Source: Dimorphilus gyrociliatus
Lineage: Eukaryota; Animalia; Annelida
Assembly: GCA_904063045.1 (NCBI GenBank)
Contig: CAJFCJ010000005.1
Coordinates: 3,342,165 to 3,406,164 of the forward strand
DNA: 64,000 nucleotides
Reading direction: 5' to 3'
Position numbers and translations under genes: made by a program. The notes beneath the pieces were generated by a model. The model was not told the origin of the DNA. It saw only the letters and a list, made by a program, of their open reading frames with translations, and did not search any database. How positions within the stretch are numbered: position 1 is the stretch's first letter; each line of letters begins with the position of its first letter. Positions 1-48,464 of the stretch are shown here, in pieces.

Positions 1-177
1 TTTTTTCTATATTTGAATATAAAATGAAAAAGTTGATAATAAGAGAATATTCTTTTCATTTATAAAATTTCGGTCACTAACCGGTTATCCTATTAGCAGA
101 CGACGCTTTGTGAGTTTTGCTCACTTTCGCTAGCATTATGAATTATATAAGTTTAAAAACTGTTTATTAGGATAAAT

Positions 178-1251
178 ATGGCAGTTATTAAAAAATTGAA
201 AAGTGGATGGTTAGTTGATCATAAAGATTTCATAAACAATTCCTACACCAACGAGACATTTGTTGATAAAAGAAGCAGAGAGTATAAAATCGTATTTAAC
301 GAGGATCTTTTTCGAATTGATGGTGAATTTCTTATGGATAGTGAATTTACTGCTAGAAATAATCAAAAATTAAGTACAATAAGAAAAAGGAAGAGAAAAG
401 CTATTGCTGATGTAAATAATTTTAAAGAGTTAGTAATAATAGATTCATTCTTAAAGGAATTAGAAGAATCGAAAGATTGTCAAACTTATTTTGAAAATTT
501 ACCAAAATCAATATTAAAAGATAATAATAAATTGGCGAGAAATTTATCGACTGATTTAACCAAGCGTCTTTCTGAGCTATCGCTACCTAATAAGCTTATT
601 CAAGATAGGCCCAACGATAATAACGAATTAATTCTTGAAGAACAAACATTTTTTATACCAAGAGGAAGTAAATATGTTCTTGGAGATGTTTTAGATGGAT
701 TTGATATTAAAGAAAAATATAATCTAATTGTTATGGATCCACCTTGGTCAAATAAGTCTGCTAAACGTTTGAAATGTTACAATCAGCTAACGTCTGATGC
801 TATTCTAAACATAGATATAGAATCTATGTCAGAAGATAATTGCTTTCTAATTGTTTGGACAACAGAGAGATGGCATAGTTGGGTTATTGATGAGCTATTG
901 CCAAAAAATGGTTTCAAGCATTCAGCTTCCTGGTTATGGTTGAAAGTTACCAATGCAGGAAAACCTGTTCGACCACTAAATGATATTCAAAATAAAGCTT
1001 ATGAATGGCTAGTTATTGGTAGAAGAGGCTTTGAAGAGATAAAAATTGACGACTGTAATGTAATATGCAGCGTCCCTTGTGCGTTACATTCGTCTAAGCC
1101 TCCCATTTATCAATTGTTTACAGATTATATAGAAACAGAACTCAATACATTAGAAGTATTTGCAAGAAATTTAAATATGAATTGTACAAGCTGGGGAAAC
1201 CAAGTTCTCAATTTTCAACATGAGCTGCTTTATAAAAAGAATTTTTTATAG
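178..1251 (+). CDS. METTL4: MT-A70 family N6-adenine methyltransferase, METTL4-like (single exon, 357 aa)
   Basis: Catalytic VMDPPW motif followed by NKSAKR; C-terminal WxWLKVTxxG, K-x-YE-x-L, HSSKPP and LEVFARNL-x4-TSWGNQVL are typical of METTL4. Confidence 0.9.
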   Translation: MAVIKKLKSGWLVDHKDFINNSYTNETFVDKRSREYKIVFNEDLFRIDGEFLMDSEFTARNNQKLSTIRKRKRKAIADVNNFKELVIIDSFLKELEESKDCQTYFENLPKSILKDNNKLARNLSTDLTKRLSELSLPNKLIQDRPNDNNELILEEQTFFIPRGSKYVLGDVLDGFDIKEKYNLIVMDPPWSNKSAKRLKCYNQLTSDAILNIDIESMSEDNCFLIVWTTERWHSWVIDELLPKNGFKHSASWLWLKVTNAGKPVRPLNDIQNKAYEWLVIGRRGFEEIKIDDCNVICSVPCALHSSKPPIYQLFTDYIETELNTLEVFARNLNMNCTSWGNQVLNFQHELLYKKNFL

Positions 1252-1300
1252 CAAAACTTTTCTTAAACACAATTAAACGACAGAGAAATGGCGTTGTTTT

Positions 1301-2813
<1,513 letters not shown>

Positions 2814-3305
2814 TCAAGGGTATATCATTTCATTTAAACTTCTCAACCATAACTTACTCCTGTAAAAGCTATAATGAAAGTAGGAACTAGTAAAAATAAA
2901 AAGAGGAACTAATATTTTCAACCATTCAATATCCTAAACCAATTTAGAACTGATATTATTAAGGCCATAATCTATGATATCCATATTGAATTATATATTG
3001 CATATAGAAAAATTAATTCAATAGAACAAAATATCTTTTTAAAACGATTGTATTAAATGCGTAGTTTTAGAAAAAAAGCTTTCTAGAAAGGTGCATAGAG
3101 AATATTTGAGACTGATTCATATTTTAATCAAGTGAATACTGATAGAAAAGACAAAAAAAATGTAAATTTTTGATTTACAATCCAATTAGAGTTTTTTGAT
3201 CGATTAGTCGTAGATTGAAGAGGAAATACCTTTATCTCTCTTTTTCCTTTTATTTTTGAAAATATGAAACGATTTTTATAGTTATCAAGAGTATTAATTT
3301 AAAAC

Positions 3306-5807
<2,502 letters not shown>

Positions 5808-19950: not shown

Positions 19951-21532
19951 TTAGATCGATAGATGTCTACTAATTTTTTTGCCATATACTTAATTGAGCT
20001 TGGATAGGTTATAGTTCGAATGTGCTCGTATATTTCCTGTCTCTGCTTAAATTCAACGTTTCTCTCGTTCTCCTCTGGATATTCTGTTTTTTCAAAGTTT
20101 CTAGCAAGATCTCGCGTCTTAATCTTCTCTAATAATTGACAATTGAAAAGTTCATCAACTTTAATCTCATGACTACAGTGTTTTCGATCAGTATTCTCAG
20201 TATAATCAACAAAGGCTTGAGTATCATTCAGGATAGTGTCTAAATCATTATCGTCAATATAATCCAGTTTTTGTCTTTTAACCCCAAGGCATTTATTCGA
20301 AGCATTTAATGACTGATTGATTAAGAGTAGACAATCACTTACAGTGTAAGCATTCTAGAATAGAAATAGTGAATAAAGTAGTATAGACGAAATTTGTAAG
20401 AAAAAAATCCATACTTCATTAGGATTTAGCCATTCGTGACTATGAGAAAGAAAGTTACCATTTCCTAAATTCTTCATAATAATATACTTAACAATTGCTT
20501 CTTCTATTCTTGAAAAATCATCTGTTTTCTATTTTGGAACATCAACAATTTAAGTTAGAGTAATTGGTATTAATTGTATAAAAAGGTTTAATTGAGTACA
20601 CTAACTATGGGAATCCAGGTGTTTATACTTGCGCTAATTCGACTATTCTCGTTATAAACAAAATGCCACCATACCGGAGGTACGTAGAGTATATCTCCCT
20701 CCTTTAATTCGACCTTATAAGCTTCTACATCCTATTTGGAGTAATAGGCTTTAATTATTTTCTGTACTTATTTTAATTAAAATTGTATGTTTTGCCTCAA
20801 AAAGAGGAAATTTCTTTAGATTAGGTGCCAGGGGATTAACATTGCTATATACACTGGATTCTTCGTATGGAATTCTCGTTGGATATATAGCTTTTTCTTC
20901 AGTTGGAGGGAATAATATCCACGTTTTACTATATCATACATACTTTATATATATATATATATATATGTACAAGAATATTACAGATTTATATAATTACTAA
21001 TATATATATCATGTATTTAATTTCCCTACCTTCCCTCTAATTGGGCAACTAAATTACAACCATAACTATCAGAGTGTAGAGGCGTATAGCAAAATTGACT
21101 ACCTAACCAAAAGGTACTATCTATACCATTTAGATCATTAAAGCCCATATCAGACCATTTGATACCATCTTCGAAGAGTCTTTTATCACTTTTCTCATCC
21201 AACATTTCTCCAATATGCACGTAACTTAAATAGGTCCATGTATCATTTCTATTTATTCCTTTCAAGGTTTCCTTATCGCTAAGCAACCATTTTTTATAAT
21301 CGCTTAACGAAACACTTATATAATTTCTTTCTGTCTCAAACTTAGCATCTTTATTGTATAACCAACTTTTTTTGCCGACATGAATTTTTTGTTGCTTCGA
21401 AGTTAATTTATCTAAATTCTCTAGCACTCTACCAGTCAATGGCCATTCTTTAGCTGCATGACGAAAGACCATCGGCTCTTTGCACCCGCAAGTTATTAGC
21501 GATCGTAAATCATCTTTTAAACTATTAGAATT
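19951..21532 (-). CDS. HSPBAP1: JmjC-domain protein HSPBAP1/PASS1
   Basis: STFWLGS, TPLHSDSYGCNLVAQLEGRKTWILFPP, PTRIPYEESSVYS and LYVPPVWWHFV. Start codon is approximate. Confidence 0.85.
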
Positions 21533-22109
21533 CATTCTATATATATAAACATGCAGATTTTGTGTCAAAAAATGTAAGGAATGAACGTAATTCCATTTAA
21601 TTACAGTGTCCATAAAAAGCGCCATCAATAGTTAACAAGTTTTATTGTCTTTTATATCGAAATCTTATATTTTAAGTAAGGTATTAAATCTATATTTATT
21701 ATTCTGATGCATATACATTTATGTAAAAAAAATTGAAAGATTGTTCATTATACTTCAGCTAAAGCCTCAATATGCTTCCTAATCTCAGCTTCATTTGTTA
21801 TGCAAATTCCTTTTAAATACCAAAACATTCTCTTTCTATCCAAAATTTTAATGTGCTTGCAAATCTACGACAAAATGATTTAATAAATAGAAGACGAAAA
21901 ATAATAAGTCTAGATACTTACGCCTTGACGACCATTTTTCTGACAAGGAGTACTAATATCTGTTAAAAGGGATTGAAATATTTGATAATGACGTCCATAA
22001 ACTTCAACTCTTTGAAGTAAAAAATATGCCAATCTGTAAAACAAATATAAAAAGGAGAAGTTCAATCCACTTTGACCAAAAAACAATTAGTCAGAGGTTG
22101 TTTAATTGA

Positions 22110-22221
22110 TTACTTTGATTTGTTCTTAGTTGTCCATGTTCCAGTTGTTCTCTTACTATTAAAAGTGACTTTTTTAGCATTACTTTTGGAGAAACAGTGA
22201 AGAATACCGCAAAAACTGAAG

Positions 22222-22254
<33 letters not shown>

Positions 22255-25200
22255 ATAACATATAATAAGAGTAAAAGAGAAAATAAAATATTACAACCTT
22301 TCACCACTATCGTTAGAATTTGAATATTCATAGCTAACTATTTTTGTATTATTCACTAACAAGATATAACCTCCTTGATTGTAAAGTCCCAATCCTTGCA
22401 TGTTCAATTCTGTTGAATTTAAATCGGGAACAGCTAATTCCTCAAATCTTTCTTGGCAGTTTTTTCTTAAGCTTTTACAAACTCCATTAATGCACTTTCC
22501 GAAATCATTATCGCAACTTTGAAAAGTCTCTTTCTTTATGCACTAGATGACAATAAAAATGGTAATCTTTTAATGACATAATGAATATTCAATTACTTTC
22601 GAATCGAATCCGTTACAATATTGACAGTCGTCTCTATTAGGGCACGATCCTTTTAACAGCTATGTTGTTGATTATTATTGATAAAAGCGTTAAAGAAGTA
22701 TATAATCAATTTACTTTACAAGTTCTTGAATTACAACAATCGCAAGCCTAAAAATAGGAAGATAATATAGATTTAAAAAGATGGAATTTAAAAATTGTTC
22801 TCTTACTTGATATATTCCGCAATCACATTCTTCTTTTTCATCTACTATTCCGTCACCGCAAAATCCTATCTGAATAGGGGAGGTTTTAAAAATACTGAAC
22901 AGCCTAACGTTTTCAATGCTACTAACCCTCTTATTTGTTTCAGTTGTACTATTTTCTAAGTAATTTTTAAATGTCTTCTGATCTATGCAATTTCTCTCAA
23001 GACATACTCCTGATTCACCACAGGGTGAACCATCTGCTACCATTACGTCGACATTTTGGCCATTTTCTTGAATAATCCAATCGCCGTAAGTTGTCTTCCT
23101 TTAAAAAGTGTGTTTATTAGAAACAAGTAAAATAGTACTCTTTTTTTTTGCTACAAACAAGCAAGCAAGATCCTGTTTCCCTAAAGCTGGCATAATAGGA
23201 TTTTTCGATGCTGACTGTGTAGAGTCTCTGTCTAGAACCCATTCATTAGCATTTGTTAAATTATCTTTAACGCATTGAAGAAGACCACAATTAAAGTTGT
23301 TTTTTCTGAAAGATAAAGAAGTATTTCATTTCTTAACAAGCATAAAAAGTAGACTATAAGAATTCATATATATATTTATATATATGTATATATATATACT
23401 TTGAATTACTACATTTCACATATGACGCTTTTCCGTTGGCATCTTTTACAATTCCACAATGGGCGTAACGATCAAAGTATCTTATTGCTACCTCATAGCA
23501 ATAATTATCAGCCTTTCTATAGTCTGCAAAAGTCAATTAGTAGATAAGATGATAGTAACTGCAGACCAATATGTATTATTAACCTGAATTCCAAACCAGT
23601 TTGCATTGGTTGGTCAATGTCAAACAGTGACCTTTGATGCAAGAAGCTTCCTAATTAAAAAGATATATTTTAGCGTAAAACGGTAATCTTTTTAAAGTTG
23701 ATAAATATATAAAGTAAATAGCAACAAACATTTCCATCAGAATCAACGCATTTAGTGAGATTATCTTTCCGTAAATCTTCTGGGCACTATAAGATAAAAA
23801 TAGAATTTAACCTTTTGAACTAATGAAAGAATATTTTCTTTGTTACATCACTATTTGTTCCTGTACAAGTTTCTTTTACATCGCAATCGTTATCTTTATT
23901 ATATCTACATAATTTACCGGCATCGTGAAACTAGATAAAAAGATAATAGAGCAATTAAATAGGAAAATTTGTCCAGAAATAATAACAAAAACCTTGCATA
24001 ATTTGACATTGCAACATTCCCCTTGACCGCACAATGCACCATCTTTAAGTTTACAATCTTCTTTACAACAATTTCGACATCCATTGTCGAGTGCCTTTAG
24101 GTGAAATAATAAAAGAGTTTTAATGGATTATCGAATGAGTTCATTAAAAAAATATCCTACTCCTCCACAATCACATTCTTCGTCCTCATTAATTATACCA
24201 TTACCACATTGATTGGAAAAGGAATGAGCTTTATAAGCTCTTGTAGGTTTGTTATTCAAACATTGGGAGCCTTGAGATTTTAAGAAATTTCGATAATCTT
24301 TTAGCGAACAAGAACTAATGTATCCTGTGTCTCTATTAAAAGCATTTCTACAGTGAAAGAACAGATAGTTAATATCGTCCTAGAATTAGCATATTCAGCT
24401 TTCTATATCTACATCGTTGGATTCATTAGGCATCTAGACTCTCCGTACTTGCAGCAACCACTAACATCATGATTCATACCAATGGCATGACCTAATTCGT
24501 GTGTCAAAAAGTGAATGGCTACATCAGCTGTATAGTAGGTTAAAAGTTATTATCAAATTAAAAGAGTGTTGATTAAAGGCTATTATTTATACTGTATAAC
24601 TAACTGCTAGATTGAAAGATTACAACGCCAGCACCCTGAAATAAGGAACAAGCTCCACCTATTGGAAACAAACCATTTACATTTGATGTTGGCAAACTCC
24701 TATATAAATAGAGAAGAAATTAGTAAATATTTCGTTCATTATGTCATTGTAAAAAGCCTACGTAATTAGTACAGTAATATCACTCCAAATGCCTCTATCC
24801 TCTATCTGCTTGACCCTATAAGGGCTAAAATTTCTCAAATAAGCGTTAAAGTTGTTATTAGCCTGTACAAGATTTTTTTCCCGCCAAATATCAATTCCAG
24901 TTAGGAAAACTCTTACATCTATTCGAGACAATCTCTGTATAGAAACGTGATAAATGATTAAAATAGCTAAAAGATCTCTACAAAAACGATGCAAATATCA
25001 ACTGCTTTTATGTATCGTTCACCTTATCGGCACCGAGGATGAGATCAGTTACAAATTTCTCAGGATCTTTTTTCTCACCTTTGAGTTTTTCTGACTAATA
25101 AAAGAGAAAATTTAGATAAAGATCCATTGTACTATATCCGATATTGAAGAAAAAAAGAACAAAACAAATAGAAGAACCCTTACACATGAATAATCGCAGA

Positions 25201-25294
25201 CAACAAATATTTCTAGATACTTTTCAATAGAGATAATTGAAGGAACTATCCATAATAATAAAATAATAGTCTTGGCAGTGAATATCTTATTCAT
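22110..25294 (-). CDS. ADAM-type metalloprotease-disintegrin (reprolysin, disintegrin, Cys-rich, second partial disintegrin-like module, probable TM), about 17 exons
   Basis: Signal peptide then KYLEIFVVCD; RVFLTGIDIW; intact zinc motif HELGHAIGMNHD with Met-turn CLMNP; CGNGIINEDEECDCG; disintegrin loop NDCD; second CGDGIVDEKEECDCG. The 3' exon boundaries are uncertain. Confidence 0.85.
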
Positions 25295-29300: not shown

Positions 29301-29436
29301 TATGAAGAACGGAAACTTCTTTTCTAAACAACTTCCTAATATGGCTGGTAACCAACAGCAGATGAGGCAAACAGAAGATTATCAAAGAAGAGTCCAAACC
29401 CAACCGAGGGATAGGCAAAGAAATCTAAGATTTTAG
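26388..29436 (+). CDS. EIF3C: Eukaryotic translation initiation factor 3 subunit C
   Basis: MSKFF..SESDSE start, [48 protein letters not shown] and C-terminal PCI domain. Confidence 0.97.
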
Positions 29437-30010
29437 TAGCTATTCAGTTAAAAAAGAAATTAATTTTTTTTTCGTATTTTATTCAATAATAAACATGTCT
29501 GTGCCGTGGAAATGTTATTTAGTTTGTTCTTTTTTTCTTATCAATATTATCCGAAAAAGTCAAGCTAATAAAATTATATCTAATGACAACGTAGTTAATT
29601 AATTTAAGGTAAAAATAAATAAAACAAAGGGCTAAACTTGTTATTTGTATTTTCAAAACATTTCAAAAACATAATTTCTACCTTCCTTAAAAGAATAACA
29701 TAACATAACGTCTTTTAATATAAGGTTGTGCTGATAGTATTCTAATCTTTTATTATCATTAATCTTTAATAGTAATAATAATACTAATATTTAAAAAAGT
29801 CTAAATGTATTGCTAAATGTATAGGAATAATACTAATCTGCCATATTTGTATTGTTTAACCTTTTCTATAGATTAAATTAACATTTAAAAAATGAAAAGA
29901 TCGAGTCCAAGATACGAATTAGTAAGCTTTCTTTTAGTAATTTAAGATAAGAATAATGAGAGAGGAAAACAAAATAATTCTCAATAATTCTTTAGAGAAG
30001 TAGGAAATCG

Positions 30011-32408
30011 ATGGCTGTTCCTATATGCTTATCCCCTCCGAATCCATCACCTAAGAGTCGAGTAAGTTTGCTTTGCCATTAAAGACGAGTAATTCCCTCT
30101 TGTAGTTCTTTTATAGTTTTTAATTATTGTTATCTTCTGTTTAAAGAGACATACAATAGCAGCTAAAAGTCGTCGAAGAAGTGACGATACTGATCCGCCT
30201 GCAAAGGTTATATTTATACACATATCTATATATTTATACTATAAATACATAAAGTTATATAATACGTTTAGAAGAAAAGGGTTGTTCCAAATAGATTTGT
30301 ATGTATAAAATAGAGAAGAAATAAGGAAAGAAAGCAATATATATGATATATTTATTTGTTTATATTTTTACATTCATATACTTTTGATTAAAGATTTATA
30401 TCTTCAATTAGAAAAGCAAAATTAAACCTATTGAAGAAACTCCAATGGTTGCTTCACCTATTATTGAGGATGCTTCTCCCACTAGAAGAAGTTCATTAAA
30501 GCAAGAACAAGTTGTATAAATTCGCTTACCTTTTCTTATATTTAGAAATGATAAATAGCTTTATTTGTTATTCTCTCTCTCTCTCTCGTATTATCTTTTC
30601 ATCCCTAAATATAGAATACTTCTGAAAAGAAGAGAGTTAGCGTATGTTATTAACAATAACTAGAACAATTCTGAAGAAAAAATGTCTATAATTCACTCTT
30701 TCTCTTCTCTCTTTCCGCTGATAGCTATCTTTATCGGGAGGAAGAAAAGTCTATCCAACTGATAGGGTTGAATCGAATTATTCAACAAATTCTGTAAATA
30801 TATCATTAACTCTTAGATTTAGCTACTGAATAAATGGAATACTAACTAAACTTCTCATTAAAAAAAGGAAGGTAGTCGAAAAGGTACAATAGAAAAGGTT
30901 AAGAAATTATACGGCTCTGGGAAGAAGAAGGTAATACTATTTATAAACACTAAGCAAATTTCAAATAATGCTAGAATTCTACGAAATTAATAAGATTAAA
31001 AGAGCTTTATTTGGGGAAGAAGAACAGTCACCTAATACTATGATTATTAATGAAAATGAGGTGATAAATATGATCAAATTTTCTCATTAAAATAAATCAT
31101 TATTTAATTATTGTTGAAGGATTTAAGATGGAAGATAAGTAAGCTTCGTGTTAGAATGTATAGCATATATAAAATGCCGGTATTATTATATCTATAAAAC
31201 ACAATCTTATAGTTTCTTATCTATATAATTGACTTTAGTGTCCAAACTGCTCGGAAGAGGATTTAGAAGTAAGAAATATATATATTTGATACATAAAATC
31301 AATGATTTTTATCTAATTCATGAACTAAATTTTACTGTAGACTTTACAATCTGATATTGCTGTAAGTTAAAAATGATGCTATATTGGTTTAATTAAATAA
31401 TTTCTATTAATCAATATATTAATGAATATCTCTTTCTAAAATTGAGGCATTACGTAAAAGAAGACTTGTAAGTGTTCTTCCTACTTTATATATTTAATTT
31501 AGTTGTCTATTTTTTTTTATAAAGAATCTTACTTTAGAAAGAAAAGAATTGGAGGTAAATTCTTATTTATTATACGAATGTTTTTATATCAAACCTATTA
31601 ATTAATACTAGAATTAAAACCTATACAGACTATGAGAAAGGTTGGAGAAAGTCTATTTTTACTCTTTTCTTCTTTAGATATGTATTATGTTGTTTGATAT
31701 TAATTTCTCTTCTTTTCTTTCTCTTCCTTTCAGTCTCAAGTATCGGATTTACAGGTAAGACTATCAATATTTGTTAACAAAAGAAACCTACACTATTATA
31801 TTTCTTATTCATTTTCTGTTTTATAGATGTTGGAAAGCGAAAGTAGCATCGAGTGCCAAGTAGATTATTTTAAATTGATGTCAAGTTATCTTTTTTTCTT
31901 TGAATTTTAAAAATAGAAACTTGAAAGGAGAAAGAAAAATCTTAAGGAAAATATTAAAGCTAAGGAAAAAGTACAAATTAATAAAAATTAATTAAGATAC
32001 TATTTTAAAATAAAAAGAAATTGATTGCGCTTGATTTTTTCAAAGGAAGTTGGTGAATTAAATACGAAGATACTGTTGAATGAAGAAAGAGTTTCTCGAC
32101 TAAAACAGATTAAAGAAGAACTAGACGAAGTAGGATATTTTTTTTTAAAAAGAAAAACTAATTTACTATAAATCAAAAATCAAAAATAATACAGAGATTG
32201 GAAATTATAGAGCAAGATAGGAGAAAAGTGAATAAATCGTTAATAAATGTAGGGAATATACCTGTATTATATATTTCAATTAAATATTGTTAAAACTTTT
32301 ATACTTTCATATTAAAATAAGGAGAAGAATCGTTTAAAAATCGAACTAAGAAATGATATTCTCATGGCTCAATCTGCTTTAGAGAGAATGTTTCGTTCAT
32401 CTGACTAA
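30011..32408 (+). CDS. Micro-exon gene: 20 phase-0 exons encoding a 296-aa basic / coiled-coil protein of unknown family
   Basis: AG-exon-GT blocks at 30011-30061, 30147-30206, 30272-30298, 30412-30510, 30615-30641, 30725-30766, 30868-30930, 30995-31060, 31120-31149, 31239-31268, 31341-31361, 31447-31467, 31525-31554, 31629-31640, 31734-31754, 31827-31859, 31917-31970, 32046-32129, 32195-32227 and 32322-32408. Every block is a multiple of 3 nt and together they give 891 nt without internal stops. A few splice sites are weak. Confidence 0.7.
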
Positions 32409-32733
32409 AAATACAGTATTAACAATAAGAAGAACTTAATCTATAAATGGAGAATGTACAAAAATAGAAAATTATATACTCTACTTTTGAATTATCTAAG
32501 CTTTATTATTAACATTCAATAAGGCGTCACTCAATAAAGTAAATTGAAGAGGCGTCTCTTTTATGTCTTTTTTTTCCTTTTTTTTAGTTTTTCTGACTTT
32601 TTGGTTGTTTTTTTTTTATTGAAAAAAATAATATGAAGAATAATTGAAATAAAAAACAAGAAAACTCTTTATATTGTTCTTTTTATAATGATTTTTTTAT
32701 GTTCTCTACTCTTTTTTTTTATCTTCACTCTTC

Positions 32734-35700
32734 TCATTCTTTTTGATGGTTTTCTATTTCTTCCTCTTTTTCACCCTCCTTTTCGTCTTTTGAATTTTGA
32801 TTTTCTTTTTCCATTTCCATTTCTTTGTCTTCTTGTCTCGTATCAGATTCAACAACTTCTGGAGTTTTCTTTTCTTCTATTACTTTCTCATCGTCCTCTT
32901 CCTCTTGTTTTTGTTCAGTTTCATTAGCGGATGGAGTGTTGTTTCTCTTCTCCAACATTTGTCTTTTCAATTCTGATTCATCCTCGATTAATTTGATCAT
33001 ATCGTTATCGCCAAATTTTTTTGCCAGTTCAATTAAGGAAATATTATCGATAACTTCTTCTCCTTCTTCATTTCTTTCAACAACAGAAACACTTTCCGTT
33101 GGATCGCACAAACAATCCTTAAAAAAGTGTCTGGCCACTTCAATTCTACTATTTTCAATACATAGTTTTAATAGTTCACCATCTAATCCATCATGATTAA
33201 ACCCATATCTCAAATTTGCAGTTATAGAACGAATTTCGGATATTGAATGAGCCGGTACCATTGGTTTGATTGTGGCAGCAATTGAATGAGCGGATGCTCT
33301 TGCTCCGTGCTGCTTTTCTCTTTCGTTAACAATCATATCTTCACCTGGTCTAAAATCCCTCCATCTTCTTCCTCTAGGACGATCTTTCGTAGGGACAGGC
33401 TTCTCTTGATCTCTTACGTATTCGTAAACTGACATGTTATTCTATTAAAAGCGAAAAGAGAAGAATTAATGAAATAAAAATTGAGAAATATAAATTCTTT
33501 TCACTACTTACAGCATCTATAGCATTTGGATCAGCACCTGCGTCTTGCAGTAATGGCCAAATCTTATGACGGTCTTTCAAGCAAACGCAATAATGAAGCG
33601 GTGTTCTCTTAATACTATCTTGGGTATTTATTAGTGATGGAAATTGTTCCAACAAGAATTCGACTATTTCCGGTTGTTCGAATAATACAGCATTATGCAA
33701 TAAAGTTCTTCCAGCCTTATCCCTACCAAATGCACATCTCTTCTCCCCTGCTAACTTTGATATCATTTGTAAATCTCCAGTTTTGACACATTCGTGTAAT
33801 AAATCAATTTCGGCTCGATATTTTGGTAGATCTTTTAGTAATATGACTAGTTCTTTAAAGTTACGTAATTCGGCTAATTCTAAAGCCGTATGAATTCTTT
33901 TCTTTCCACCTTTTGCTTGTAAAATTCTATCGTAATCGTCTAATAAAAGCTGTTCGATTGCATGGAATTCATCATTATTAACCAATTCCATAATACGAGC
34001 ATCCATTAAGCCGTTTAACTTTGAACCATCTTCTACTTTATAGATATCAATATAGTCTCTTGCGGTGCTTCCTTCAACATCGCGGGCTGCCATGTCGATA
34101 CCTCTATCGAGTAGTACTTCAACAATATCTAATAAGGTATTATCTCGTCTTTTCTTGCTGATTGCCCTATAAATAGAGAGAAATTATACGATATTGTTAA
34201 TCTCAGTTTTGTCTTTTTATTTGTTATTTCACCTGTGCAATAAGGTTGCTCCTAGTTCATCTCTTAGTTGCAGGTTGGCATTCTGGGCGATAACCATGGT
34301 GTTTTCATTGTCGACATTATCTCTAAAGGCCCAGAAAGCAACAGGTCCGCAGGGTGAACATTCGGCATAATCTTTGCTTAAGTCTGCGCCAAACTTAACC
34401 AATTCAGCAAGTACCTCAGCATTGCATAATTCTAATGCAGCAACTACTATTGGCCTAGGTAAAAATTCTGCATGACCATCCCAAGTAAGACCTACGTGAA
34501 AATAATCGTCCATAGTATTGACCTTGAAGGAACCTTTACCCAAAGCGAGTAGTTCTTTCATAGCTTTTACTTCGCAAGCAAATGTTGCACATACAAATTC
34601 GTTAACGTGTTCAAATTTTTCTAAAAGTTTATGAATTTCCTCGTGACCGGATGTTTCGCAAACTTGAATGAGAAACCTATCGCCTTTCTTAACCTTGACC
34701 CGACACCAAGACGATAGCCATCGTTTAGCTTTGTTCACATCACCTTGGCTCACAGCAGCCCATAAGCCAGGTAGATCTTGTATTCGATATTTCCTACCGA
34801 AAACTAAGGCCCCTCTATCTTCGTAAGTCTGCTCACTAACAGTGCTACCGTCCAAAGCTGTTATTGCAGGGTCTATTCCAACTCTTATACAATGGGTCAT
34901 TAATTCTTCATCAGATTTTTTACCGGCTAATATTAACGCCGTATCACCAGCGGCATTTCTAGCGTTAACATCTATACCAATTCTAGCTAATGCATAGATC
35001 ATACGAATATATATACGTCTTTTCTCCATATCTTTCTCGCTAGAACAAAGCTTAATGATAACGTGCAAAAACGTATAACCTCTAGTTTCATCTCGTTTGC
35101 CAATTTGGTTCAAATTGATTGAGTTCGATTTTATAAGATTTAATGCTTGCTGCAGGCTTTCAGAAGTTGCAGTTTCTAATTTATTATAAAAATCAGTTTC
35201 CTCTATGCCACAAGCGATTTTAGATAATTCTATATGATACCAAGAGGGTATACTGACGCCATATTGCTGTAATACTTTGATAGTTTTATCCGATCTTTGT
35301 CCAAGAGACGACAAACCGACTAGAAGAGGAGTAGGTGGTACTTTAGATTCATCGGCCTGATCTAGTTTAACCAGTCTTGTTTTAAGCATTTCGGCAACTT
35401 TTTCATGATCTAGTGCATAGGCTGAACATATAACCTCATTCATGTACTCGTATTCATTCAATAGTTGATCAATTTTCATATTACAAGTTTCATCGCAAAT
35501 ATCTCGAAGTGTTTTATTCTTTCTTATACGAATTCTACACCATGATTTTAATAGTTTTGAAGTTAGCTCGACATCTTCTTTCTCAACAGCTTTCCATAAA
35601 CCACATTTGGCACTTGTTTGACCTTTTACCAGAACGCATTGATGATTACGGTAAGTATGAATTACTCTACATCCTTTCTGATTAACAATCATGGGATCAA

Positions 35701-36817
35701 CACCAATTCTTATTAAATGTTCGCAAAGTCGTTCACCTTCCTGTCTAATACAGGCCAAGTGCAATGCTGTATTACCATGAAAATTTTGAGCATTAACAAT
35801 TACACCCCTTAAGGCAAGGGCATATAAAATTGGTATAAGAGCAGCAGCATCACCAGTTCTCCTAACCACATGCGGTACAACATCAACCGCAACATGCAAC
35901 AGTGATCCAGAGTCTTTTTTCGAACGTTGTCTAATCTATATATATATTATCTTTGAATAAATAATAAACTAATGAAGTAGTACAAACAAAAATAAAAGAG
36001 AGATTAAAATTATAATAACAGAATTATGATTAGAGAAGGAAGGATAGTAAAGAAAAGATCATTTGAGCATGATGTATTAAACAGCATCCTATACCTTATT
36101 AAGCGGTAACTTAACATAAATAATGCTTTTTTAATTACCTAAGCCTATAGGTAAAAATATGTAAGCATACATATATACAGTATGTATATATACAATTTTT
36201 TATAAAAAAACAAGTGTGGACAAAGAGCTTTGTTCGAAGTAATACAACCAACACAAAACGGTAGTGTTGTTTACACTAAAAACAATATAATTTGTATTTC
36301 GATCGATGAGTTTGTTTTTTAATACAATTCACGTAAAATTTGAATCAAATGACAAAAAAGGTTATTTATTTTTTTATTTATACGAATAAAAGAAGATCGA
36401 TTAATTAGCACATTTCGTTGACAGATTACTGCCTTTTTATTGTTGCTATATTACTTTAATTTATTACATTTTGTGTATGTAAGGTTATCTATTCTTAAAA
36501 AAATATTTTCGTACTTTCTCTTTAGATAAGAAGCAATTATAAAAAGATTTGTGATTATACTTCAACTTGTTACAGAGAGAAAGAAATTAAAGGCAGCTAG
36601 CTGGCTAGCTAGCTAGATAAATAAATATAGACAGAATAGTAGTAGAGGAGGAAGGAGAAGGGAAAGAGTATAATGATTTTTTTTTTACCTCGCTAGAAGA
36701 GAGTTGATATCTTATTAAATGTAGAGCGTTTGCCAAGGAAGTTTCCGTTGCTCGTTGAATAAGATGGTAAACTTCCCTTTCTTCGAGTTCTTTTTCCGGT
36801 TCTGTTCCCGGTCTCAT
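32734..36817 (-). CDS. Large multi-ankyrin-repeat protein with acidic C-terminal tail
   Basis: Ankyrin motifs GNTALHLA, GYTFLHV, GDTALILA, GATLLHRA, GRTLLHNA and RTPLHY across ORFs 36817-36640, 35935-34232, 34168-33508 and 33441-32734 (approximate exon limits), joined by GT-AG introns. Confidence 0.8.
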
Positions 36818-42977: not shown

Positions 42978-43051
42978 TTTCTCCATCTCTCTCAAACCAA
43001 AAAATGTTCAGTTCTGAAGTATTTGAATGCTTTTATATGCACAGTCTTGAA

Positions 43052-44265
43052 TGACTCATAAGCGATAAGTGATAGATGACTCACCCATTCTTAGGCTTAT
43101 ATACACATACTATTAATGACTTCAAAAGATTCAAAAATAACGTTCTAGATGGAAAAATGTTAAGATTCTACTGATAAACGTAGAATAATAATTATTTTCG
43201 TATAAAGGGTCAACGGACAATATATAGCATGTATGTATATACATACTAAAATATATATACAATTCACCTCAATTACATTGCACCAGATGCAAAAAGAGGA
43301 GAGAACGTCTCGATTTTGTTCTCACCTGGAATAACTGGAATTTGCGCATAATTATAATCTTTTCGAAAATATAATAAAAGCGAAAGTATGACTCATGCAG
43401 TTAACTTTATATATTGACGTTTTATACAAGATCGAAGATAGTATCGAGATTTTTAAGTTAACAACATTCATTTGCATATTATATTTTTAATATTAACAAT
43501 AAGATATTTATCCCATAAGCATTACTCATTTAATCTTTTTCAGTGTCTTTCCTTGTATCTTGGAGAATATATATATCAATACATCATAATATTTCTTATC
43601 ACTAGATCTTAAACTTATTCTTTTGTTCTATCATCACCATTTCAAGAATAATGTACAAGTAATATACTATTTGCATGTCTTTCTCTGCTGTTAGATTGTT
43701 ACGTTAAGCAATATTTTAGATTTCTGGCTGATTATAAGCTGGAGAAATTTTTACTAACTAATAGAAACTGTAGATTACTAAAGGGAGCATCTCTGTACAA
43801 TTACAGGTAGAAACGTTTTATATTACAGGAACTAATTTTTTTTTATCCTTTTCAAAGATTTCTCTATCATTTAACTCTGGAGAAAGAAAAAGATATTTAT
43901 TTATATATAAATAAATATGTATGTAAAGCTTCCTTATTACTGATTCCATTTCTTTAATGATTAATATATCTTTTTAATCATACAATTCTAAATTAGAAGC
44001 TACTGGATCTATCAATCTAGAAACTTTGTTTATAAGAACAATATGTCTATTCAATTTTTTTAAAATCGCACATTAAATAACTCAATAAAACTGTTAAGTA
44101 CGTTCTTCAAAAAAATTGATAATCAAAGTTTTGATAGAATTTAGGATTATTAGCCCTACTATATTCAGATAAAGCTATTACTCATTCTGCATAAATGTCG
44201 CTGCTTAAGAATATTAAAAATAAATGTAGGGTACCAGGTAAACCCTGGCGAAAAGTTATGAGTCA
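43052..44265. promoter_or_regulatory. Cluster of four AP-1 sites (TGA[C/G]TCA) upstream of the 4xTM2 gene
   Basis: Exact sites at 43052-43058, 43077-43083, 43389-43395 and 44259-44265, each preceded by A. Confidence 0.5.
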
Positions 44266-44302
44266 TAGTATAACAATGCCTGATGAGTAATTTTATATAT
44301 AC

Positions 44303-44336
<34 letters not shown>

Positions 44337-46206
44337 TTTATATATATATATAACGAAGGTTAAGATTGCCGTTTTTTTGGAAATTTAAGCAAAAGAGTCT
44401 AATATTGTCTTTCAAATGAGATATGGAAAATATCTCCTCCTCTTTCTATTCTTTTCGTAAACATGATTAAAGGAAAAAAGGAGAAAAGTAATTATAACAA
44501 TTCTTAATATGCCATTTTTAAAAGGAAATATTTTGAAAAAAGCGTCTACTAAGAAAACAGCATCGAAAAGACGCTATTCTAGTTTCCTTTTGTTTATTTA
44601 AATGTTTTTTTGATTGAATAGTATGCTTCTTTTGCAAAGTGTTTTTGGAGGTTGTCTTTAAACGATGGTAAATTGAAAGACTTTTACTAGGCTAAAATTA
44701 TTATAAAAATATATTTGTGATAAGATAAGAGACTATGAATCAATGTTGCAGACACGATTTGAAGGATAATATATTTAAAAATCCAAAGTATACTTTGAAC
44801 ACAAAAGGGGAGTGTTTTTCTGAAAATTATACAACATACATAAACATAAGTAAATATTTAGCAAAAGCTTAAGGTATGACTGATTGTCAGAAGTTTATGA
44901 GAATTATTTAGGAAAGCAAAGTATAACTGGAAATTTTAATAGAAACTGTATAATAATAAAATTGAAAGAGTAGAAAGACAGTATTCTAAATGAAAAGGAT
45001 AAAAATTCAATTCGAAAGTAGATAGACTCTTTATTTTCTATTATTATTAATTTTATATAGCTTAAAATTTCATCTTCCGCCCTCTCTTTATCATTTAATA
45101 TGAAACAAATGTTCTCGTAAGACTATCAAAACAATCTTCAACTGTACGGAAGTTAAATGCTTTCTCCTGGAATAGACTACTTATTGATATCGTATAAAGT
45201 GCTAAAGAGTCAAATGGAAAGGAGAAGGAGTGGGAGGAGGAGGCGCAGGCGGTGTTGGTTCTAAATGGAAAAATAATGGAAGACTATGCAAATAATATTA
45301 GAATCAAATTAAAGGAAAACTACAAGCAAATATGACAAGAAAAGTCTTCAAATAATAAATAATAATAATAATAAGAAAAGACAAAAGAGAACTGAACAAG
45401 GAAGAGAAATGAATAGGAAATCAGAAAGTATGAAAATTTAGATTCCTTTTCCTTTTTTTATTTTATATAAATTCTCTTGAAAGGAATAAGGAAGAGCGTA
45501 ATAAGAAATAGAAGAAACATGTAAAATTAAATTCAAATATCACGTTTCTGCTTGTAGCTTTTCTTTTGTTAAATTTGTCTCTTGTCATATACACTATATA
45601 TATATATATATATACTGTATATATAGAATTGCTTTTGCTGTATATAAAATCTCCTGCTCTATGTATCCTCTCGCTCTCCCCTTCTTTCCTGTAATTTATC
45701 GTCTTTATCCCTCTCCTCTATATATTATTCTCTCCCGATTCTTTATCTATAGCTCAATGTTTTTTATCTGAAAAATTTCTATTGAAAAAGCGATAGGCTA
45801 ATGAATAGTGCAAAGCTTGCAAAAATGATTTGAGATTAGCATAAGTCTTAAATATATCAATATAGATGGATAAACTAATTTTTAACACATTTCTCTCAAT
45901 CTATCTATAAATCCATTGGTACTGTAATAGTGGAAAAAACTTGCCAGCCATAATTCACAGCTAATGTCTGTTATTGTGATTATTTTAAGTATGCAAAAAG
46001 TAGAAGAAAAGAAATTTTTTAATATGAATGAAGTAAAAATAGTAGTCTGTTTTACTAAATTTCAGTATTGATTATTAATTTATGCAAATATTAATGTGGT
46101 TTTGCACAATCCTATCTGTTGTATCCAGTTGGTTTTCAGGGAACCATTCTCTTAAATATCATATTTCTTTTTCAAAACGAATTCTGGATTAGTCAGTACA
46201 ACACAT

Positions 46207-46221
46207 TCTCTCACTCTCTCT

Positions 46222-46262
<41 letters not shown>

Positions 46263-46272
46263 TCTCTCTCTC
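46207..46272. repeat. (CT)n microsatellite
   Basis: TC dinucleotide run with few interruptions. Confidence 0.9.
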
Positions 46273-46506
46273 GCTAAGATAAATTTATAAATATTTATAT
46301 ATACAAAATATACATCTAGTATATATACTCTATCTTCCTATACATCTCCTGAACGTCTGTGTCACCTTTTGTCTCGTACATTCATTTACTCTCTCTCTCT
46401 CTCTCTCTCTCCTCTCTACCTCTCTGTCTTTATTTATCTATCTCTCTTTCTGTCACTACGCCTCACTCGTGAACGACCTGAGGATATAGAGTTTTTTCGG
46501 CAAGAT

Positions 46507-46884
46507 ATGAAGCGTGGTTTAATTATTCTTCTCTGTTTTCAATTATTATTTTTCTCATTAGCTGATAGTTACAGGATTTTCTCTGAAGAGCAAAAGATAA
46601 GGTAATATTTTATCTATTTTACAGAAAATTATGTCTTTGCTTTTTCTTTTCAATTCTCTTTTAAAGAAGAAACTTTTCTTTTTTTTCTGATTAAAAAAGA
46701 AAAATTAAATTAAAGTTTCAGACAGAAGAGGAAACTAGAAGAGGAAGCTTTAATGGCTATCAAATTCTTATGTAGTTTGAGAAAATGTAATGAACTTGTA
46801 AGAAATTTGGCAATGGATCCACTTTTACCAAAAAATCCAGGAGATATTTGTCAAACGCAATTATGTTCAAAATATGGAAGTTAA
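46507..46884 (+). CDS. Orphan secreted peptide precursor, 2 exons (46507-46601, 46722-46884), 85 aa, 4 Cys
   Basis: Spliced product MKRGLIILLCFQLLFFSLADSYRIFSEEQKIRQKRKLEEEALMAIKFLCSLRKCNELVRNLAMDPLLPKNPGDICQTQLCSKYGS; signal peptide, KRK site, two CxxxxC motifs; AG|gtaata donor and tttcag| acceptor are phase-compatible. Confidence 0.65.
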
Positions 46885-47937
46885 AAAGTAACATATTAGT
46901 TTGAAATAAGTGTTTTAATAGTATTATCTTTCTCTTGCTTTGTTGAAATATCAACTTTGAAGAATAAATAAATGAATAAAATTTAGCAGAAGCATACAGA
47001 AAAAAAAAAGAAATAATATTTTTTTTAAAAAGAAAGAGTTTAACTAATGTAATGTTAGAAATGATTGGGAATTTGGTTGCTTTATTTCCTTATTATTATT
47101 ATTATTATTATTATTATACAAGGAAGTTAATAAAACTAATTAATCTATTATATATGTATATACAGTATATATCGATAGATTTATTAATAAATGTTTATTA
47201 ATATAAAATTAAGGAGAAAAGGAACGTAGATGAATTCCTCTCCCAGTAATAGTTTTCTCTTTATAATCGCTGTAATATCTATATTTTTCAATATGTACTT
47301 AACGTATTGTATAAATATGTACATGTTTATATTAAGTACATTATATTACGTCCTCGTTTAAGCAATTTAAGATTTATCCGATGGCCATTTATTTATTATT
47401 AGAACAGCTTTTTCCAACTTTTCCTCTTTTGTTAAGTTAATTTATAAAGTAAATTCCTTATTCAATAAATCTCTCTTTATATTATCTTTTTTTCCTCTTT
47501 CTCTCGTCTCTGTAAAAGAAAATATCAATTAAATTGTCAATTACATTATCATAGTTTTCAGCAGTAATTTTTTCTCTTTTATTCTTTTTTAATTAACATT
47601 AAGTTCTTCATTATTCTTAGATAAAGTAATAAATTCTTTCTAATTTCTTCCCTTTGCTTATTCCATCAAGTTTATACTCGTAAATGACGTGAATAAATGA
47701 AGAAAAGTTTGCCTAATTTGATTGTTCTTTTGCCATAAAACACTTGGGATATTAAACACTTATAAGTAAGCATGAGAAGTAACTTTTCGTGACGATAATA
47801 AACCCTTATAAAAGAAAGATAAATATCATCATTAGTTGAAAATGCCTAAAATTCTTTCTTTTCTTATAAGAAGAGATTTCCTTATCTAAAAAGCATAAGT
47901 TCCATAAATCTAAAACAATATAGATAGAAATAATAAT

Positions 47938-47943
47938 AAAAAA
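47938..47943 (-). terminator. RNA polymerase III oligo-T terminator of the tRNA-Val gene
   Basis: T6 run 8 nt downstream of the discriminator base on the minus strand. Confidence 0.7.
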
Positions 47944-47950
47944 CAATTCT

Positions 47951-48023
47951 TGGTTCCACTGAGGATCGAACTCAGGACCTCTCGCGTGTTAAGCGAGCGT
48001 GATAACCACTACACTATGGGACC
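47951..48023 (-). tRNA. tRNA-Val (anticodon AAC)
   Basis: Reverse complement GGTCCCATAGTGTAGTGGTTATCACGCTCGCTTAACACGCGAGAGGTCCTGAGTTCGATCCTCAGTGGAACCA, 73 nt. Cloverleaf with anticodon stem CTCGC/GCGAG, loop TTAACAC, and A and B boxes. Confidence 0.95.
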
Positions 48024-48464
48024 AGCTGATAGAAGTTATCGATAGAATGATTCATAGAGAAGGAAACAAAAGATGGGAGGAGGAGTTTTGGAAAGGGAAG
48101 AAAAATTGGCGCGAAAATGAAATGATTTCGATAAAAAGTATTTGTATTTTTCTCTTTTGATTTATTAACGAAAAAGGAAGGAGACTTATCGATGTTAATA
48201 AAAAAGAATACAAAACAAACAATAATCTAAAATAAATAGAAAAACAAATAAAACAAATAAGTCAATTTTAATATCAGTTTTGTTAGAAGAGAACGCCAAG
48301 GATAATGGTGATGATGATATAATTGAAGAAAAGGGAAAAAGAACGAAAAGATCGTCCTTTTTTATCCATTTCCTTCAAACTTTATATTTCTAATATTATT
48401 TGAATTAGGTATAGATATCTATTGAAGAATTAATCGAAGTAGATTTCTTCCTTTAAACAGGTGT

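Follow-up and report, generated by a model that had tools for sequence, protein, structure and literature searches.

A gene of about 21 short exons, the introns of which are all in phase 0, lies on the forward strand of a 64-kb stretch of the genome of the annelid Dimorphilus gyrociliatus (assembly GCA_904063045.1, contig CAJFCJ010000005.1). This whole stretch of 64,000 nucleotides is called the window here, and all coordinates refer to it. The analysis confirms that the gene is real; it is taken to be single-copy. It is predicted to encode a protein of about 320-340 amino acids, and within the C-terminal coiled coil of this protein the exon boundaries keep a near-universal register with the hydrophobic core. 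What stands out is the architecture of the gene, which is unusual and statistically striking; a new kind of system is not implied.

Exon chain and intron phase

The preliminary description had joined 20 blocks, each a multiple of three in length, into a gene that it regarded as hidden. The block lengths do chain from 30011 to 32408 to give 296 amino acids plus a stop codon, with introns of 57-113 nt, and the chain is unique except for one poor alternative for its exon 3. In this 20-exon model the GC content is 0.35 in exons versus 0.21 in introns, 18 of the 19 introns contain an in-frame stop codon, and the best coding score falls into frame 0 in 16 of the 20 exons. Because multiples of three can be imposed unawares when a sequence is read by eye, a phase-blind gene finder with equal phase priors was built. 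The remaining genes of the window served for training, and its splice-site matrices were derived from no more than about 120 introns, themselves predicted. It found all of the internal acceptors again, arrived at 21 exons and placed 20 of 20 introns in phase 0, and this outcome was unchanged at a phase-0 prior of 0.1. As a positive control, introns were displaced by 0-2 nt, and the phases imposed in this way were read back correctly. The phase-0 share had a mean of 0.38 and a maximum of 0.71 in local shuffles, and no further tile of the window went beyond 0.67. Given a background of 0.38-0.47, the probability of finding 20 out of 20 introns in phase 0 is 4e-9 to 3e-7. The claim of an all-symmetric phase-0 layout is thus borne out.

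It is hardly credible that the gene is a prediction artefact, in which AT-rich DNA was joined up while block lengths were tacitly confined to multiples of three. Exons 4, 13 and 15 (exons are numbered according to the 21-exon model unless stated otherwise) are admittedly weak one by one, and the raw score of the finder fails to separate genes from antisense, tiles of which reach 100-200 elsewhere in the window. For this latter reason the phase share and not the raw score was taken as the statistic. The raw score amounts to 183 for the gene. On its reverse strand only 39 is reached, which speaks against an artefact; the comparison with shuffles (60-65) overstates significance. An artefact is further contradicted by the phase-blind recovery with its positive and negative controls, by the GC contrast between exons and introns, by the coherent helix described below and by the agreement of an independent annotation.

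This annotation was retrieved with the last exon as sole query, an unrelated antisense open reading frame of the window having only fixed the length range of the search. It is DgyrCDS3888 (CAD5114852.1, A0A7I8VFT8), a model for a protein of 230 amino acids, the gene end of which lies exactly at 32408. Gene models of D. gyrociliatus were derived from AUGUSTUS predictions and PASA transcripts merged by EvidenceModeler (10.1101/2020.05.07.078311). DgyrCDS3888 comprises 14 of the 20 originally proposed exons, has the same stop codon and 13 acceptors in common with them, and all of its 13 introns are in phase 0; the phase-0 pattern is common to three independently made models. The gene was hidden only in part, as it is already partly annotated and 6 of the 20 exons are absent from the annotation. 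DgyrCDS3888 begins at an internal methionine (30445), is devoid of four 5' exons, uses the donors 30513, 31179 and 32248 and omits three internal exons (starting at 30615, 30725 and 31629, exons 6, 7 and 15), each of which is favoured by the phase-blind model by 8-16 nats. Were the deposited model to rest on transcripts, these omissions would represent either a genuine isoform or an argument against the three exons. The public annotation of the locus is probably 5'-truncated and lacks micro-exons. The deposited protein has no assigned function and forms a sequence cluster of one, and in the searchable literature no papers were found that name it.

The start codon and four donors of the exon model are uncertain, although none of the preferred alternatives disrupts the reading frame. 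The ATG at 30011, originally taken as the start, is probably internal: a model that begins further upstream, with an exon at 29892-29921, and uses 29996 as acceptor scores better by 7.7 nats and adds 15 basic residues. For the donors 30510, 30766, 31149 and 32227 there are in-frame alternatives within 2.2 nats at 30513, 30793, 31179 and 32248 or 32263, respectively. Doubts about the donors at 30767 and 31150 had already been voiced and were apt. The proposed exon 1 (29892-29921, 30 nt, + strand as for all following exons) is predicted by the phase-blind model to encode MKRSSPRYEL and was missed both in the preliminary description and in the annotation; its start context is rich in A, its donor reads GTAAGC, and an intron of 74 nt follows. 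Exon 2 (29996-30061, 66 nt, 20 nats), inside which the first exon had been thought to begin, exon 3 (30147-30206, 60 nt, 19 nats) and exon 4 (30272-30298, 27 nt), the weakest of all with only 3.3 nats, are absent from the deposited model, the start methionine of which is located inside exon 5 (30412-30513, 102 nt, or 99 nt with the donor at 30510). Exon 6 (30615-30641, 27 nt, 8.8 nats), which has strong splice sites, and exon 7 (30725-30793, 69 nt, or 42 nt with the donor at 30766; 16 nats) are skipped in the deposited model, which contains exon 8 (30868-30930, 63 nt) and exon 9 (30995-31060, 66 nt). Exon 10 (31120-31179) measures 60 nt with the donor at 31179, as in the deposited and phase-blind models, or 30 nt with the originally chosen donor at 31149.

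The gene is flanked by eIF3c (end at 29436) and by a convergent ankyrin-repeat gene (end at 32734). A candidate polyadenylation signal, AATAAA, lies at 32533-32538 on the + strand, 125 nt past the stop codon, and is recognized by its pattern only. The ankyrin-repeat gene (32734-35935, - strand) is long, with large open frames of 556, 218 and 233 amino acids, and is not among the called genes of either locus that covers it. Elsewhere in the window, a deposited product of 1075 amino acids (positions 1-4850 of locus L002, window about 20445-25294, - strand) combines ADAM (reprolysin, disintegrin) with JmjC/Cupin_8 families and looks like two adjacent genes fused by the gene caller. An intronless open reading frame of 357 amino acids on the + strand (178-1251) is MT-A70/METTL4-like and carries a DPPW motif; an exact record was not found in the protein collection, and its annotated start or structure therefore differs. 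About 5 kb in the region 43000-48400, which extends from a TM2-domain gene to a PH-domain gene, are without a long open reading frame or a convincing gene model.

Exon boundaries and the coiled coil

The proposal of a C-terminal coiled coil is upheld. A helix of about 145 amino acids with coiled-coil periodicity, corresponding to about 21 nm, is predicted, and AlphaFold models residues 92-228 of the deposited protein as a single helix (pLDDT > 90) that follows a break at the sequence CPNC, while the N-terminal part is of low confidence. Heptad, motif and scoring computations used the predicted splice products of 296 and 343 amino acids built from window coordinates. The long helix begins in exon 11 (31239-31268, 30 nt; present in the deposited model), which carries the single CPNC motif and the helix break. 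Two exons of one heptad each follow, exon 12 (31341-31361, 21 nt) and exon 13 (31447-31467, 21 nt, 5.3 nats). The latter has a weak GAG acceptor; this site (31446), on which doubt had been cast, is used in the deposited model. Exon 14 (31525-31554, 30 nt) encodes 7+3 amino acids and exon 15 (31629-31640, 12 nt, 8.4 nats), which is skipped in the deposited model, encodes four. Exon 16 (31734-31754, 21 nt) is again one heptad, and exons 17 (31827-31859, 33 nt), 18 (31917-31970, 54 nt) and 19 (32046-32129, 84 nt) encode 7+4 amino acids, 14+4 amino acids and four heptads, respectively; exons 12, 14 and 16-19 are present in the phase-blind as well as in the deposited model. Exon 20 (32195-32248) comprises 33, 54 or 69 nt with the donor at 32227 (preliminary description), 32248 (deposited model) or 32263, and the last coding exon (32322-32408) comprises 87 nt including the stop codon.

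Three exons (12, 13 and 16) indeed measure exactly one heptad, as had been stated. The stronger fact, which is new here, is the near-universal register of the boundaries. The internal coil exons encode 7, 7, 10, 4, 7, 11, 18, 28 and 11 (or 18) amino acids, all of which are 0, 3 or 4 modulo 7. With core positions assigned from the protein alone, 9 of the 10 coil junctions precede an a/d position of the core by exactly one residue (P 9e-5; 4e-4 when corrected for four offsets). The coil exons of the deposited model are likewise all 0, 3 or 4 modulo 7 (P about 0.001). Furthermore, the second residue is hydrophobic in 9 of 12 exons of the C-terminal half (permutation P 0.0025), a test that depends on the acceptors alone. 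Among the exons of the N-terminal half there is no length pattern modulo the heptad. The earlier statement that heptad periodicity runs smoothly over the junctions needs correction: the register shifts several times through stutters and is not perfectly smooth.

Phase bias could also arise as a by-product of recent intron insertion, either introner-like or driven by proto-splice sites, into K/E-rich coding sequence. The intron density of the gene, 19-21 per kb of coding sequence, would be in line with such a gain, as it occurs despite the net intron loss reported for this genome of 73.8 Mb with its median intron of 66 bp (10.1101/2020.05.07.078311). The introns, however, have no sequence in common, and only 7 of 20 junctions end in AG. 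Proto-splice weighting of the K/E-rich sequence leads to an expected phase-0 share of 0.36 and to a probability of about 2e-9 for 20 out of 20, and the heptad register would be left unexplained. Recent intron gain is thereby largely refuted and must be considered very improbable.

The preliminary description had suggested that the length of the rod is tuned combinatorially. Stated more generally, selection for exon skipping, be it regulated or combinatorial, and for in-frame donor choice would have preserved the symmetry of the exons, and rod length and tail motifs would be tuned in the manner of troponin T. This we consider rather unlikely. It agrees with the symmetry of every exon and with the fact that the deposited model uses other in-frame donors than originally proposed and omits exons 6, 7 and 15, an omission that may reflect a true shorter isoform. 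Acceptors are weaker than those of neighbouring genes (median 5.3 versus 7.3 bits, P 0.0009, the reference set being one that also trained the matrix), and the exon 20 donors 32227 and 32248 are 21 nt, exactly one heptad, apart, which makes this pair the best single spot to seek length tuning. On the other hand, skipping of a single coil exon would shift the register for 5 of the 9 internal coil exons. Of 512 possible skip sets no more than 80 leave the register undisturbed, close to the chance value of one in seven. Moreover, the protein collection yielded only one isoform of this gene, and the motifs RYEL/RSRK, KSR/RHTI, PPAK/KKR and KKRVS/L (the slash marks the junction) are present only across junctions and need neighbouring exons, which favours co-inclusion of adjacent exons. 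The idea of combinatorial length tuning appears weakened on these grounds.

The basic tail and the search for relatives

The N-terminal 170 amino acids have a pI of 10.4. The SP/TP sites noticed earlier in this half number seven, and there are four RRxS/T-hydrophobic motifs (shuffle P 2.5e-4, a generous value since the motifs were chosen after seeing the sequence) as well as two K/R-x-L-F/Y-G motifs (KKLYG and RALFG), chosen in the same manner. We take these three types to match the consensus sequences for CDK, for Aurora/PKA and for cyclin docking. RRHTI spans the 5' junction of exon 3; exon 5 contains S/TP sites and RRSSL, exon 8 RKGTI and KKLYG, and exon 9 the cyclin-docking-like KRALFG. 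The NLS-like PPAK/KKR forms only across an exon junction, just as had been described, namely at the 3' junction of exon 3. With a best 19-residue hydropathy mean of 0.15 and a basic N-terminus a signal peptide is absent, and the predicted protein contains no hydrophobic stretch fit for a signal peptide or a membrane anchor. Together with the basic character and the NLS-like motifs this agrees with the proposed intracellular location.

Two further elements were observed. The proposed first junction (29910-29921/29996-30010) would form the sequence RYELRSRK, which is reminiscent of motifs that bind importin or the nucleosome acidic patch, for instance the chromatin-binding motif of foamy-virus Gag; the latter possesses an arginine anchor. 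The single CPNC motif (31239-31250) is placed at the helix break directly before the coil and, as we assume, could bind zinc in a dimer in the style of a Rad50-type hook.

As judged by sequence searches, the gene is shown to be an orphan without detectable homologue. For the deposited 230-aa protein a collection of 5.8 billion proteins contained no homologue even with E allowed up to 10, in a search that needs shared 5-mers, sees only proteins of 126-402 amino acids, started from a 5'-truncated query and is weak for diverged coils. The same protein gave only generic coil matches with PDB sequences, Foldseek and Atlas, no locus in metagenome contigs, and no Pfam match above the cut-off. Exon 5, when compared with 1.84 billion representatives, retrieved only a low-complexity repeat protein. 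No match was obtained in Pfam with ten single exons, in Atlas with the last exon, or in Rfam, and PDB searches with two single exons yielded nothing beyond the GCN4 zipper at E 0.8.

The gene could nevertheless belong to a conserved coil family (CENP-Q/U, Mis12 complex, an augmin subunit, SYCP3/SYCE type or CCDC) as a strongly diverged orthologue with an inherited intron pattern, a reading that is fairly unlikely and does not exclude the others. A disordered basic tail, a coil and cell-cycle-type motifs fit these families. A long coiled coil with a disordered basic tail bearing phospho-motifs is present here as in kinetochore, augmin and synaptonemal families, though it is not specific to them. 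In meiotic coiled-coil proteins sequence similarity can be eroded to the point where relatives are no longer recognized (PMC8598163), and the sub-threshold Pfam scores of the deposited protein include the CENP-F zipper (E 0.03) and HAUS3 (E 0.39). These scores are, however, far below the cut-offs and typical of any coil, and the empty search among 5.8 billion proteins and the lack of anything meaningful in PDB, Foldseek and Atlas speak against orthology. With the 230-aa model and with single exons, neither Pfam families nor solved members of CENP-Q/U, HAUS, SYCP3/Cor1 and SYCE were matched, in searches of low sensitivity for diverged coils. A presumed likeness to the ends of SYCP3 and SKAP found no support in Pfam or PDB and was dropped.

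The layout had been likened to that of the schistosome micro-exon genes (MEGs). According to criteria taken from reviews, exons of at most 36 nt make up as much as 75% of MEG coding sequence, the products are secreted or membrane-bound, and many skip isoforms occur. Many short symmetric exons that can be dropped without a frameshift and the lack of homologues outside the lineage are common to both. In contrast, exons of at most 36 nt account for 23-32% of the coding sequence here in all three models, and the product is a coiled-coil protein of a free-living annelid that has neither signal peptide nor membrane anchor. Sequence kinship with a MEG family was not detected (no homologue at E up to 10). 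The gene is not a schistosome micro-exon gene; it has the symmetry and lacks the micro-exon share and the secretion.

Other systems resemble the gene in single respects. The SCPP genes of vertebrates, which encode caseins and the phosphoproteins of enamel and bone, have small exons, are derived from SPARCL1 and specify secreted products. All of their introns are in phase 0 (PMC7807025). They share this feature and a disordered, fast-evolving product with the gene studied here and are an architectural analogue only, as the annelid protein is intracellular, basic and coiled-coil-forming, lacks a signal peptide and shows no homology. In the gene of fast skeletal troponin T (TNNT3), the product is intracellular and contains a heptad region, the small 5' exons are of the same phase, and skipping of exons 4-8 has been demonstrated, which concerns the tail only (PMC2447309). 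Here, symmetry spans the whole gene including the coil, any skipping is hypothetical, and homology is lacking. In the K-domain of MIKC-C MADS proteins, finally, several exons encode a coiled coil that presumably became longer when an exon was duplicated (bioRxiv 10.1101/2023.03.15.532791); there, four exons encode part of a conserved transcription factor domain, whereas at least ten in-register exons belong to an orphan without MADS domain in the present case.

Proposed growth by exon units and possible function

The explanation that we favour, and hold to be somewhat probable, is that splicing is mostly constitutive and that the gene grew by in-frame exon units while encoding a fast-evolving nuclear or chromosome-associated coiled-coil protein. 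To a gene made of 0-0 exons only further 0-0 exons and donor shifts by 3n nucleotides could be added without a frameshift. Within the coil the hydrophobic stripe would be kept only by units with a common starting point in relation to the core (7, 4, 10, 11, 18 or 28 amino acids). Growth by 0-0 exons would explain phases and register alike, because only in-frame, core-matched units survive. The layout would then be a record of growth in which exons were duplicated long ago or newly recruited, and few exons would be missing from the main mRNA. Series of symmetric exons in human genes are associated with disorder and internal duplication (PMC3632108). Evidence against growth by duplication is that little sequence trace is left: DNA repeats in register with the exons were not found, and the start-anchored similarity of the coil exons is weak (P 0.03 over four and 0.14 over seven residues).

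As to function, the sequence motifs tentatively point to a dimerising rod on chromosomes or the spindle, of the kinetochore, centrosome or meiotic axis type, a suggestion that is possible without being the probable one. The basic tail would bind chromatin or microtubules and would be released upon phosphorylation of the CDK and Aurora/PKA type.

It is also conceivable, albeit decidedly improbable, that D. gyrociliatus possesses a whole class of lineage-specific intracellular genes with all-phase-0 introns and coil-register exons, and that skipping and heptad-spaced donors give rise to regulated rod lengths in the present one. If true, this would be a non-secreted counterpart of MEG-type variation and a molecular ruler for a chromosome or spindle protein; dwarf males and females, or eggs of the two sizes, might for instance have rods of different length. 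Genes with small exons and introns exclusively in phase 0 are known mainly for secreted disordered proteins, and here the layout spans an intracellular protein, with about 20 introns per kb kept in a genome known for intron loss. The junctions in coil register would be the footprint of an orphan rod protein built exon by exon.
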